Shown here: positions 9,211-14,103 of the stretch, piece after piece | How positions within the stretch are numbered: position 1 is the stretch's first letter | How the letters are laid out: every line of letters starts with the position of its first letter | Assembly (NCBI RefSeq): GCF_003704095.1 | Contig: NW_020844871.1 | Location: forward strand, 1 to 64,000 | Direction of reading: 5' to 3' | Length of the DNA: 64,000 nt | From: Pocillopora damicornis | Taxonomy: Eukaryota | Notes under the pieces: generated by a model | The model's database searches: none | Seen by the model: only the letters and a program-made list of their open reading frames with translations | Told to the model about the DNA's origin: nothing | Program-made: the position numbers and the translations under genes

Positions 9211-12200
9211 TCAAGCATTGTTTTTAAGTCTCTCGTTGAATATTATCTCTGGACAAAGAAAAGGTGTGAAGAAAGTCATTCCTTTGGTCTTCACACGCCT
9301 TGCAGCGTCAGGATTGGCAAGTTGGAGATTGTACCTCTGTAAAACAGAAGCAACAACTATTCGGGTGATTGCCAGGGCATACCGATAACCCAAGCATTTC
9401 CTTGGACCCATACCAAAGCGGAAGAGAGAGCCTGGCACTGGTCTTGCGCCGTTCGCGAAGCGACTGGGGTCGAATTTGTCAGGGTTTCTCCAATACTTCT
9501 CGGAAAAGTTCAGTGACTGGGTATCCACGCAAACGGGAGTCTGTTTAATGAGATAAAAGGGCTACGTCAGTTTTTGTTAGTTTAAATGCGCAGGCAACAC
9601 ATTGTATTCGCGTGACGTAATGTAAACACGCGAGGAGTAATTTTTATCCGCGTGTTCCTCGTTCGCGCGCATTGCTTCAAATCGCTTGCACCCAGCTCTC
9701 TAGGAACCTGGCAAAGGACTCAGATTTCAAAATTATATTAGGCAGAAAATGCGAGATCTTGCAATAAAAATGAATTTCAGCTTTTTTAACTGTAAGGAAA
9801 TTGAAATATTCACGTTTCATTAACACTGATTTAGGGCCAATCATCAGTTCAGTAACATATGGTGAATCTTTTCACAAATCTCGTGCCCAGATCCTACCGC
9901 GTAACTTAAATATAAGGACCTCACAACCGCTTAGCCGTGGAGGGTCTGGGTACAAGACTATCCCTCCGACTCTCTACTGAGGATCGCCTGTTCGCCTTTC
10001 AGGGAGCCTAGGGAGAGGAAAATAGCTGGCACATGAAAGAATTCCTCACCCCTTTTGGAATTTGATAACCTCCAATATCAGTGACAGGTTTCACTGTTCT
10101 CTCAGGGAGACTAAGCGCCAATGCTGGGTTCATCCGGGCACTTTCTTTCAGAACCATCTCCATATAAGGTAGCTTGTTATCCAGGTCTTCAGATGAACTC
10201 GGGTCAGCCCCTAATAATATATCGTCTACTTCCTGTTGAACTATTTCTTGAACGGAAGTGTAACGAGCAAGATCGGCCAAGGCAAACGAAGTGGCAGCGA
10301 AGCTGACGTCAATATTCAAGAGCAGGATTTCATTCACAGAATGAAATAGCTGTGCCAGATATAACAAAGACAGAAGTGAGTACGGAAAGGGTTTTTTTTC
10401 TCTTCTTAAAATTTATTTTTGGCCTTTGTTGTTGAGATAGGACGGAAGTTAAATGGATGAATAAATCAGTGGTTGGATGGGTACATGGATCGAATGAAAT
10501 AATTAAATAAATGAACGAACGAGCGAAAAAACGAGGGATAGATCGAACGAGCGATCAAACGGGGGATAGATGGAACGAGCGATCAAACGAGGGATAGATC
10601 GAACGAGCGATCAAACGGGGGATAGATCGAACGAGCGATCAAACGGGGGATAGATCGAACGAGCGATCAAACGGGGGATAGATCGAACGAGCGATCAAAC
10701 TAACGAGCAAACGAGCGAATGAATGAATGAATGACAGAAGGAAAGAAGGAAGGAAAGAAGGAAATGAAGGAATATAAATGAACGGACTAACGGAATGATG
10801 GACGAAAGGATCAGTAAAGGATTGAAGAATTGATAATAAATGAATCAATAAAATAAAGGAAGACCTTTCGTCTACCTCTTGCTCTCCCAAGTCGAGTGCG
10901 TGAGTCTTCAGTTGTTCCATCATGATAAAGAATAATCCATCATTAGACCTGAGTCGTCCCTCCTCGTATTCTTCAAACAAGAAAAGGTTAAACGCCTCCC
11001 ATGCTTCGTTGAAGGCCTGAGCCGTCTTGTTCACCTTACTCGGAACATAGGAGTAGAATGGCAGCCTGGTTTCACCCACATTAAACTGATTGACGGCATC
11101 CTGAAGCAAATCACTGACCTCCATGATACGTTGGAAATATTTTTGTAGGACTTCTTCTCCGTAGACGACTTGCACAAGTACACGAAGTGTGACGTTGGCA
11201 AGACCCTCCTTTTGAAGATCCACCGGCCTACCAACTGGTAAGGAATTTAGGAATGTGGTGCACTCTCGTCCAATCGTACGCAGAGTGGCCGAAACAGCAC
11301 TGGAAGAGAAGTATTTCTCGAAAGGGCCGCGGCATCGTCTCACCTCGTCACGCCCGTGGCTGGTTGCCAAGCAATTTCCTAAAATGTCTTTGAAAACGGT
11401 GCCGAGGCAGGTGAAATCTCGGTCGCGCTGGTGCGAGTAGTGGTCGGTATAGAACGAGCGAATGGCATCTGCGTCAGCTAAGATCCTGCGAGGATATTAT
11501 AAGAAAATAAAAGACCATGAGTTCTTGATCGATGTATGATAAAAAATACATACATATAAAGCACTAAGTCTAGCTATTTCGGAAAAGTTATGCATCTTAG
11601 TCGTAAGAACGAATTTCCTCGACTCCAGACTCCAGACTAAAAAGTATATACGGCTAGATCGGCTCAAGAGAGCTATCAANNNNNNNNNNNNNNNNNNNNN
11701 NNNNNNNNNNNNNNNNNNNNNNNNNNNNNNNNNNNNNNNNNNNNNNNNNNNNNNNNNNNNNNNNNNNNNNNNNNNNNNNNNNNNNNNNNNNNNNNNNNNN
11801 NNNNNNNNNNNNNNNNNNNNNNNNNNNNNNNNNNNNNNNNNNNNNNNNNNNNNNNNNNNNNNNNNNNNNNNNNNNNATAAAGGGTCATTAGGTAAATTGT
11901 ATTATGACACAACCAAAATCCTCTGGCCTGCCCCAGGCGATAAATAATGAGAGATCCTGGTAAAGGCGTTACAAATATTTTCAGTAGACATCTTAACGGC
12001 TCATTCCCAAATATGGCGAGCAGTAGGGCCGAACATTAATAAACCAGTTTTGTCATGATTGAATGTTATATAAATCAGAGACACCTGAAACTACCAATTA
12101 AAGCATTTCGACGCGTTTTTGTTTTCATTTCTGAAAACCAGCCTTGGAAACGGTGATTTACAAAGCAGAACTGCATTTTAATCAACTCATTCTTCCTTTG

Positions 12201-14103
12201 AAGAACTGTGTATTGGTTGAAAAATTATCGGCAGTCCTTTCGTGTCTCCATAATTAAGATTACAATCCAGGTGTACCCCTGCAGAGGAACGAGTGATTGC
12301 ACCTCTTGTAATGAGGTTTAGAAATTTAGGAATGGATTAAACCAAAAGATACTTACACAACTGGTGTCAGACAATGCCAGATGTAGTAAATTGGGCCGTG
12401 TATCTTGGACAGCGGTCGACCAAAGAAATTCACTTGGTGAAAGTGCCCGTAAGGTAGGTGTGGCAATTCTCCTCGCATTCGTTCTCCTTTGGCATTTTTC
12501 CATGGGACTCGCCAGTAAACTAGTGCAACCTTCAAACAATAAAATATATAGATAACTCAAGCGGGTAAAACTGAGTACACACTTACATAGCTTTTTATTA
12601 GGCGAGTGAAGATAAAAGCGTTAGGGCGAAGGCTTAGGAAACGTGAGGAACACTCCTCCTCTAGCGTGGAATAAAAGAGCCAGGCCATCTACCTCTTGAG
12701 TCACAAGTTATGGTCTCCTATGCACGCACGGAATAAATGAGCCACGCGCCCACCCTTTCGCCCCGCCACGCGTTCTTCCACGCGCGCCTCTCGCACGTAT
12801 CTCGTTCTTGTGGCTCTCCTCGCTCTTTCACCGTCAGCCCGAAGTCGCTGAAATACGTTGAAAAGAAATAATGTCTGTTTTGCTGACCAACTCTTAAATT
12901 TCCTCCGCTGCTTGTCAACATATTAAGCGTGATTGAGTTTCCTGTTTTGTTGTTTTTGCCAGCGATTTTTCAAATCGTGACTTGAGATGAACTACAACAA
13001 ATTGTAATTCTTGACCGGATGTTTTTTTACGTTCCAATAATCTAAGGGACTTTAGGGTCGGAGGGTGTTCCTTTTCCCGTAAGGTCAAATGAAAAAATAA
13101 TGACCTTTGATTATACTCACTTTCCCGTTTATCCTCTTTGGTTTACAAAAGGCTAAGCTATATATGCTCGGTAAAAGTGCTTTATTTTTTTTTGAGGTTT
13201 GCCGCTCGCCGCAAATGACTTTATCTAATAAGGCATCTATTAATAAATAGTATCGCATTTCAATCAATGCAAAGCGTTATGACGCTCGCCAACACTTTTT
13301 GTTGAGAACGTTCATTGAAACATTCGTTCCATAAAACTGTTCAAGCTTTTGTCAAAAAGCGAATTTAAAAAAATAGAAAAACACGGATATTTCGGGTAAT
13401 GTTTGATAATATTCGGAAAATCTTGGGTGTATCATCGGTGCCGATTAATCACTCTAAATAAAAAAATTACTTCATTTGAATTATTGAATTGAATGAAAAA
13501 CAAAAACAGACTTTCGGATAATCTTCGGAAATTTCTAGGAAAATTTTCGGAAGTTTTTGAAAATATTCGGAGTCTTAAATTCAGCCGGAATTCCGGATTC
13601 CGGGTTTTTTCAGCTTACTACAAATTTCGCGTTGCCTCTAGTCGTGTCAAGTCGGCTCCTGAGAATATTTTGTTCCAACGATTCTTTGCACAGAAACGGG
13701 ATCACGGCGCGCATGACCTCTATGAAAGACGTTTATTTTAACATCGATCTAATTTGATTTAATCCCTCAAGTTTTAGGCGACGTAATTCATTTCGAGATT
13801 AACGAAAAGTTGTCTTTAGAATTATGCACAGAGAAACTTTCGTGCCCCCTAGTGCGAAAGTCTGTGAACCGTACGTTATGGACTCTCCTGTTCTACCCAA
13901 GCTGTGTATCAAAACATTTTGTCGGACAGTGATTGTTTGGCAGTGATTATTATTGGAGGAATCAAGAAAATAAAATACACGAGGTACCTTCACTAGTGAT
14001 AATAAATACTTACCTGAATACTTCGATACAAAAGTGACCGCGTGAGAAACAGTATTACAAGCAAAGAGGTGACTAAACCAAGTGCTTTCCATTCTTCGAG
14101 CAT
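9211..14103 (-). CDS. Cytochrome P450, 500 aa, 5 coding exons (14103-14014, 12529-12357, 11485-10876, 10349-10050, 9540-9211)
   Basis: All introns are GT-AG with consistent phases, and the exons total 1503 nt. Motifs: N-terminal membrane anchor MLEEWKALGLVTSLLVILFLTRSLL; ExxR (ESAR); IPKGT; PDKFDPSRF (PERF region); heme motif FGMGPRKCLG; atypical I-helix EILLLNIDVS. Confidence 0.93.
10515..10715. repeat. Minisatellite (~29-bp unit gatagatcgaacgagcgatcaaacggggg, ~5-6 copies) in P450 intron 3, flanked by gaat/gaag simple repeats
   Basis: The tandem units are directly visible. Confidence 0.85.

Follow-up and report, generated by a model that had tools for sequence, protein, structure and literature searches.

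A P450 gene beside a cyclodipeptide synthase gene

The stretch of Pocillopora damicornis contig NW_020844871.1 analysed here (positions 1 to 64,000; hereafter the window) carries, on the minus strand at 14103..9211, a five-exon gene for a cytochrome P450 (P450). A distance of 484 bp separates its start codon from the start (14587) of a divergently transcribed gene for a cyclodipeptide synthase (CDPS), beyond which lies a gene for a membrane protein of the nucleoside-transporter family (ENT-like) (Table 1). The locus is a real, expressed, single-copy gene, and its product is a class II P450 of 500 amino acids anchored in the endoplasmic reticulum (ER). Each of the five exons, when translated, matches RefSeq protein XP_027041517.1 (P0192; 500 amino acids) with 100% identity; this entry is titled 'cytochrome P450 monooxygenase aclC-like isoform X2 [Pocillopora damicornis]'. 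Whole-protein analyses were made on this sequence and exon searches were made exon by exon. The gene is a singleton in the coral genome, its best paralogue being 29% identical over residues 206-470 only.

RNA depth was found on the P450 exons, with none or very little in the intron bins, and all four introns are spliced out in RNA runs from several studies. In addition to the two joints listed in Table 1, RNA contigs join 11484/5 to 12356/7 and 12527/9 to 14012/4, the intron ends being GT..AG on the minus strand. The junction across intron 1 is supported by RNA contigs of two studies: contigs of runs X1 and X7 skip its 871 bases, which end in CT..AC on the plus strand, and depth is zero in the bins wholly inside the intron (11508-12195, assembly gap included). 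Exons 1 and 2 meet in frame through the split codon GT/G (...CLTPV-V-ILADA...), and the segment HGPIYYIWHCLTPV-V-IL straddles their junction. Since the gap lies within a spliced-out intron and orthologue transcripts are colinear across every P450 exon junction, the coding sequence is continuous and no exon is hidden in the gap. An earlier note on this DNA had placed the P450 at 10050-12529. Exons 1 to 3 do lie inside this span, but exon 4, with VDTQSLN and FRFGMGPRKC, and the anchor exon lie outside it. The peptide segments quoted in that note (ILGNCLA, VDTQSLN, FRFGMGPRKC and others) were all found on the minus strand.

Intron 2 contains a 28-bp tandem repeat at 10516-10700 (6.6 copies, 95% matches; Tandem Repeats Finder), and an A/G-rich low-complexity stretch continues onward to about 10860.

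Table 1 Positions in the window of the P450 gene parts, the P450 motifs and the neighbouring genes
Feature	Position	Strand	Description
P450 exon 0	14014..14103	-	Start codon and N-terminal membrane anchor, residues 1-30 MLEEWKALGLVTSLLVILFLTRSLLYRSIQ, then GTAAGT donor
P450 exon 1	12357..12529	-	Residues 31-87 and first 2 bases of codon 88; contains HGPIYYIWHCLTPV; donor GTAAGT starts at 12356
P450 intron 1	11486..12356	-	GT..AG; encloses assembly N gap 11680-11876
P450 exon 2	10876..11485	-	Last base of codon 88 and residues 89-291; divergent N-terminal half, helices B-H; ILGNCLA
P450 intron 2	10350..10875	-	RNA joint 10349/10876; contains 28-bp tandem repeat
P450 exon 3	10050..10349	-	Residues 292-391, I-helix to K-helix; LFHSVNEILLLNIDVSFAATSFALADLA, ESARMNPALALSLP; Pfam p450 5.9e-12
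I-helix motif	10302..10319	-	L302-N303-I304-D305-V306-S307 at the place of canonical A-G-x-E/D-T-T (HMMER register)
K-helix ExxR	10134..10145	-	E360-S-A-R363; columns invariant in alignments A2 and A5
P450 intron 3	9541..10049	-	RNA joint 9540/10050 in 4/4 RNA runs
P450 exon 4	9211..9540	-	Residues 392-500 and TGA; VDTQSLN, PSRF motif, heme loop, C-terminus; Pfam p450 8e-14
Heme-binding loop	9388..9423	-	F431-R-F-G-M-G-P-R-K-C440-L-G442; Cys440 codon 9394-9396
CDPS	14587..15394	+	Divergent neighbour; large open reading frame 14840-15394 is the verified part; Pfam CDPS 6.3e-17
ENT-like membrane protein	16767..18083	+	438 amino acids; nucleoside-transporter family; Pfam Nucleoside_tran 5.2e-12

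P450 hallmarks and the I-helix

The coral protein scored 159.1 bits against Pfam PF00067 (cut-off 22.8). Exons 3 and 4 each match the Pfam p450 domain alone, and exon 2 alone has no Pfam match. The heme-thiolate loop FxxGxRxCxG (FGMGPRKCLG), the ExxR motif and the PERF-type motif (P416-S-R-F) are all canonical, and G434, R438, C440 and G442 are invariant in alignment A5. An AlphaFold2 model made from a 32-sequence alignment has the P450 fold with a predicted local distance difference test score (pLDDT) of 90.9, and residues 2-37 of the anchor region are helical in the predicted model. Foldseek matched the model to CYP184A1 and CYP3A4 with a probability of 1.00 and template modelling (TM) scores of 0.74-0.81. 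Searches of the PDB by sequence and by fold turned up generic class II P450s alone (CYP184A1, CYP3A4, CYP17A1), at about 20% identity, and nothing closely related.

The I-helix motif (A/G)-G-x-(D/E)-T is common but not obligatory in the P450 superfamily. The L-N-I-D-V of the coral protein keeps only the acid of this motif: relative to A-G-x-E-T-T, Gly is replaced by Asn (N303), the acid is retained (D305), and Thr is replaced by Val (V306), which is followed by S307. This register was given by HMMER alignments of exon 3 to CYP73A, CYP184A1 and CYP3A7, all of which agree, and the predicted I-helix breaks exactly at residue 303 in the AlphaFold2 model. The earlier note had held that the helix lacks the AGxD/ET motif and has lost the conserved Thr, reading N-I-D-V-S in its place. 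The alignments and the invariance of the helix in the family described below bear out the loss of both the motif and the Thr; the helix is indeed non-canonical, but the register in the note was one residue off, and the acid is kept.

A small family of eukaryotic P450s marked by an invariant I-helix Asn

An exhaustive phmmer search with exon 2 uncovered 41 relatives at E<=1e-3 among 1.84 billion representatives. Beyond anthozoan orthologues, these included proteins from Gefionella (a malawimonad), Ancoracysta, Balamuthia, Rotaria socialis and Lecanicillium as well as metagenome and transcriptome proteins, and none of the 41 was a CYP of a standard animal clan. Orthologues with 59-84% identity were found in Montipora, Acropora, Porites, Actinia, Actinostola, Exaiptasia, Dendronephthya and Paramuricea. 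The ESM Atlas returned generic P450 clusters only (CYP4C1-like and aromatase).

A maximum-likelihood tree of 50 sequences (LG+C20+F+G4) was built with insect clan 3 and clan 4, plant CYP71 and bacterial P450s as outgroups. The 30 family members in this tree form one clade with a support of 100/99 and a stem of 0.82, inside which the anthozoan P450s are nested as a clade of their own (100/99). All the outgroups fall outside the family clade, the clan 3 sample forming a separate 99/98 clade. The coral protein thus does not nest within the sampled standard animal clans 3 and 4; nesting in such a clan was part of what the earlier note held would speak against its reading.

Across 31 family members from anthozoans, rotifers, protists and fungi (CYP5293), the positions E298, N303, D/E305 and V/I306 are each kept in 31/31, giving the helix pattern E-I-L-L-x-N-x-(D/E)-(V/I) instead of A-G-x-(D/E)-T. 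Because it is invariant across these members, the motif is a family signature rather than a product of chance or a lineage-specific loss. The coral P450 therefore belongs to a small, patchily distributed eukaryotic family, the 'NxDV' P450s, which includes fungal CYP5293. The fungal members, among them CYP5293A2 of Talaromyces and BBA_09720 of Beauveria, share a clade with the coral P450 and show the same helix (E-I-L-x-x-N-x-D/E-V/I). They are only 23-25% identical to it, lie in secondary-metabolite neighbourhoods (PMC3387728), and are linked to genes for nonribosomal peptide synthetases (NRPSs) or O-methyltransferases, not to CDPS genes.

Linkage of the family to cyclodipeptide synthases

The transporter-CDPS-P450 trio was found in the same relative orientation in four other anthozoans: Actinia tenebrosa, Actinostola, Paramuricea clavata and Dendronephthya gigantea. 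The CDPS copies next to the P450 orthologue in these species are 51-59% identical to the coral CDPS, and the ENT-like copies (loci L002, L004, L005 and L006) are 63-68% identical. As the trio occurs in both Hexacorallia and Octocorallia, it has been retained in both lineages. In D. gigantea (L005:2935-11664), three CDPS paralogues (256, 227 and 227 amino acids) surround the P450 orthologue, one of them on the opposite strand within the P450 gene span.

Some distant relatives carry the two domains in one polypeptide. In Rotaria socialis, a 795-amino-acid protein (P0018/P0043) contains both a p450 domain (1.8e-48) and a CDPS domain (2.9e-21), the latter 29% identical to the coral CDPS. A single uninterrupted exon of 503 amino acids takes in both the I-helix and the CDPS domain with all that lies between them, and the rotifer fusion is therefore not an annotation artefact. 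A second fusion is the 611-amino-acid protein P0039, and a metagenome contig (L012) encodes an 863-amino-acid fusion in a single open reading frame (ORF). P450-CDPS fusions in one ORF thus occur in at least three relatives, and in a further member (P0024) the tail weakly resembles a CDPS (TIGR04539, 33 bits). P0018 and P0039 belong to different subclades; the placement of P0024 within the family is not settled, and L012 was left out of the tree.

Physical linkage to a CDPS is found for the coral P450 in its window neighbour, in the four other anthozoans and in the fused relatives. The family is functionally coupled to CDPSs, as a three-gene unit in Anthozoa and as one polypeptide in rotifers and uncultured eukaryotes. 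Because distant members are fused to a CDPS, the link to diketopiperazines is independent of gene order. A diketopiperazine substrate for the coral P450 is therefore strongly supported; the earlier note had suggested such a substrate independently of gene order, on condition of a GliC relationship, and the fusions, together with the synteny of P450, CDPS and transporter across Hexacorallia and Octocorallia, support it.

The same logic is known from bacteria, where CDPS-associated P450s (CYP121, CYP134A1/CypX and NascB; TIGR04538) and the 'CDPS 71' fusion (PMC5816076) have a P450 beside or fused to the CDPS that tailors the cyclodipeptide. The bacterial P450s of this kind are soluble and of class I, while the coral enzyme is of class II and ER-anchored. 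It is not a member of NCBIfam TIGR04538, which it matches with 27 bits (cut-off 500) in the C-terminal third only. The domain order also differs: in the eukaryotic fusions the P450 is N-terminal and the CDPS C-terminal, opposite to the bacterial fusion (PMC5816076).

Some further features of the relatives' loci were observed. In D. gigantea the ENT-like gene is present a second time, as a fragmented copy (L005, about 4409-5459). Directly downstream of the P450 gene, the two octocorals have a gene for homogentisate 1,2-dioxygenase (HgmA; L005:14798-17867, L006:13138-13643); it could be part of an extended unit related to aromatic amino acids, or merely reflect conserved synteny. A. tenebrosa (L002:1-3315) has an SMP-30/gluconolactonase-like (SGL) gene on the transporter side of the trio, and none was seen at the other loci.

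In Penicillium, 3.5 kb separate the family member from a bimodular NRPS of A-T-C-A-T-C organisation, an architecture typical of fungal diketopiperazine synthetases. In this Penicillium waksmanii neighbourhood (L009:1-21697), genes for the NRPS (1955 amino acids), an O-methyltransferase, a second P450, two Zn-cluster regulators and a fatty-acid-synthase alpha subunit were found, and it may be an uncharacterised diketopiperazine cluster. In the genome paper of the gastropod Lymnaea stagnalis (PMC11589774), a euthyneuran-gastropod-specific orthogroup is annotated 'cytochrome P450 cyclodipeptide synthase-associated'. Diketopiperazine-type P450s may thus also exist in molluscs, as another example among animals, and could there be of the bacterial TIGR04538 type.

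Proposed function and chemistry

It is highly probable that the coral P450, reduced by cytochrome P450 reductase (CPR), oxidises a cyclodipeptide made by the adjacent CDPS, and that the ENT-like protein transports the substrate or the product. In this scheme, the CDPS would release the cyclodipeptide that serves as the P450 substrate, the ER-anchored P450 would tailor it oxidatively with electrons from CPR, and the transporter would move one or the other compound. By analogy with GliC/TcpC-type enzymes, the chemistry may be a monooxygenation that targets the diketopiperazine ring or a position adjoining it, such as C-alpha or N hydroxylation. The invariant Asn303, at the helix break and the canonical Gly position, and Asp305 may take over proton delivery from the absent Thr. 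Hydroxylation at C-alpha or N and oxidative coupling or cyclisation are about equally plausible as the reaction type.

GliC, SirC, TcpC, AclC and VerC are P450s of fungal epipolythiodioxopiperazine (ETP) clusters that hydroxylate the C-alpha of a diketopiperazine and, in the case of TcpC, also N. The RefSeq automatic names of three orthologues come independently from this group: aclC-like (Pocillopora), verC-like (Acropora millepora) and tcpC-like (Dendronephthya). Names of this '-like' style mirror the best Swiss-Prot match. The GenBank annotation of the Acropora cervicornis orthologue is asaD, and AsaD is an N-hydroxylating enzyme. On the basis of the RefSeq names, a resemblance to GliC, as proposed in the earlier note, is plausible and in a sense already on record in public annotation. 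AclC, VerC and TcpC are the GliC counterparts of their ETP clusters (PMC4938161, PMC10086836); TcpC clusters with GliC and SirC (PMC4938161), and AclC has the GliC role in aspirochlorine biosynthesis. The enzymes of this group share with the coral P450 a eukaryotic origin, the membrane-type architecture and a presumed diketopiperazine substrate, and the earlier note ascribes a similar I-helix to the GliC type. They act, however, on a diketopiperazine made by an NRPS and not by a tRNA-dependent CDPS, and the coral enzyme, in an animal host, has no sulfurisation gene near it.

The coral P450 could accordingly be imagined as a functional orthologue of the fungal ETP C-alpha bis-hydroxylases, which would yield alpha-hydroxy or acyl-imine diketopiperazines that thiols can trap. 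In addition to the three names, the occurrence of fungal family members in NRPS neighbourhoods favours such a view, as does the helix AEIVFANLDVT of P0024, which agrees with the GliC helix as the earlier note gave it; the GliF paper is silent on the GliC helix. We nevertheless regard this orthology as rather unlikely. One orthologue is named after AsaD instead, and no named ETP P450 was among the exon 2 matches of identifiable origin. The five anthozoan neighbourhoods are without genes for glutathione S-transferase (GST), gamma-glutamyl cyclotransferase, dipeptidase, C-S lyase or a GliT-like protein, and in the annotated flanks of L002, L005 and L006 and the scanned window ORFs there was no GST, GliK/J/I, GliT or GliP-type NRPS. 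The conserved neighbours are the CDPS and the ENT-like transporter only. With no conserved sulfurisation gene nearby, GST and GliT-like genes included, the thiol-conjugated products suggested in the earlier note are unsupported.

Several points weigh against our reading of the coral P450 as an oxidase of CDPS products. The likeness to the GliC group is one of RefSeq names. Word-index searches with P0042, the family profile A2 and the fungal P0036 yielded anthozoan orthologues, generic insect, plant and bacterial P450s and CYP5293A2, and no named ETP P450; the fungal relatives retrieved are of the CYP5293 type and not known ETP enzymes. Linkage to a CDPS is not universal in the NxDV family, Balamuthia and fungal members being without it: for Balamuthia and Lecanicillium, neither annotation nor a CDPS hidden Markov model revealed a CDPS within 10 kb. 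The outgroups of the tree are limited to clan 3, clan 4, plant and bacterial P450s. Finally, the conserved Thr is also lost in P450s that couple and do not hydroxylate, such as CYP121 and CYP158A2.

The diketopiperazine may instead be tailored by oxidative coupling or cyclisation without oxygen insertion, through C-C or C-N bonds or conversion of the indole of a Trp cyclodipeptide to a pyrroloindoline, in the manner of CYP121 or NascB. The Thr is absent family-wide, as in several coupling P450s, and Trp-containing cyclodipeptides, on which such reactions typically act, are the products of the characterised anthozoan CDPS, that of Nematostella (PMC4159871). The retained acid and the invariant Asn at the O2 groove, however, are compatible with normal O2 activation, the protein shows no affinity to the bacterial CDPS-associated family, and its best Swiss-Prot-derived names are those of hydroxylases. 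Our confidence that the coral enzyme works by coupling is accordingly low.

We consider it very improbable that a bidirectional promoter region is all that the enzyme has in common with the CDPS, and that it is an everyday animal CYP of the detoxification or sterol type (CYP3-like) whose substrate has nothing to do with diketopiperazines: some orthologues are titled 3A6-like, 3A13 or lithocholate 6-beta-hydroxylase and CYP3A4 was the top PDB profile match (202 bits), but CYP1A2 (193 bits) and CYP2R1 (190 bits) score nearly the same, so that the similarity is generic and implies no specific clan affinity, clan 3 sequences are excluded from the 100/99 family clade, the gene is a singleton without a detoxification-type expansion, and its synteny has been kept since the hexacoral-octocoral split, with repeated P450-CDPS fusions elsewhere. 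The animal CYP3 clan (CYP3A4, insect CYP6/CYP9), although microsomal like the coral P450 and giving the best PDB sequence and fold matches (about 21% identity, TM about 0.75), has the canonical AGxET helix and no likeness to the coral N-terminal half.

A wider evolutionary picture can be drawn only tentatively, and we hold it to be possible rather than probable. The anthozoan unit would predate the hexacoral-octocoral split and make oxidised (alpha-hydroxy, N-hydroxy or dehydro) cyclodipeptides. Its P450 would belong to an ancient eukaryotic clade dedicated to diketopiperazines, parent of both the fungal GliC-type enzymes and the P450-CDPS fusions of rotifers and protists, in which O2 is activated by the Asn/Asp pair instead of Thr.

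Relation to earlier work

The gene was already annotated in RefSeq, and the pairing of CDPS and P450 in bacteria and the existence of animal CDPSs are known. The Nematostella CDPS is the only characterised animal CDPS, and the reviews PMC5816076 and PMC4159871 name no tailoring partner for it. In the literature searched, there was no account of the anthozoan P450, of the three-gene unit, or of the P450-CDPS fusions in rotifers and uncultured eukaryotes, nor of a eukaryotic class II family of Thr-less P450s tied to CDPSs. Animal-encoded biosynthetic gene clusters for small molecules are rare, and a P450 kept beside a CDPS across Anthozoa and fused to it elsewhere offers a testable route to the mature diketopiperazines of corals and anemones and to their ecological role. 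The invariant Asn-x-Asp-Val helix represents a natural experiment in O2 activation without the conserved threonine. Should kinship with GliC be confirmed, the NRPS-based pathways of fungi and the tRNA-based pathways of animals to diketopiperazines would share one lineage of tailoring enzymes.

Other open reading frames of the window

None of the other long ORFs in the window resembles a sulfurisation or further tailoring enzyme, and those at 28814, 46060, 49573 and 62159 have no Pfam match. The ORFs at 1358-2401 and 57247-58425 encode TPR and ankyrin repeats.

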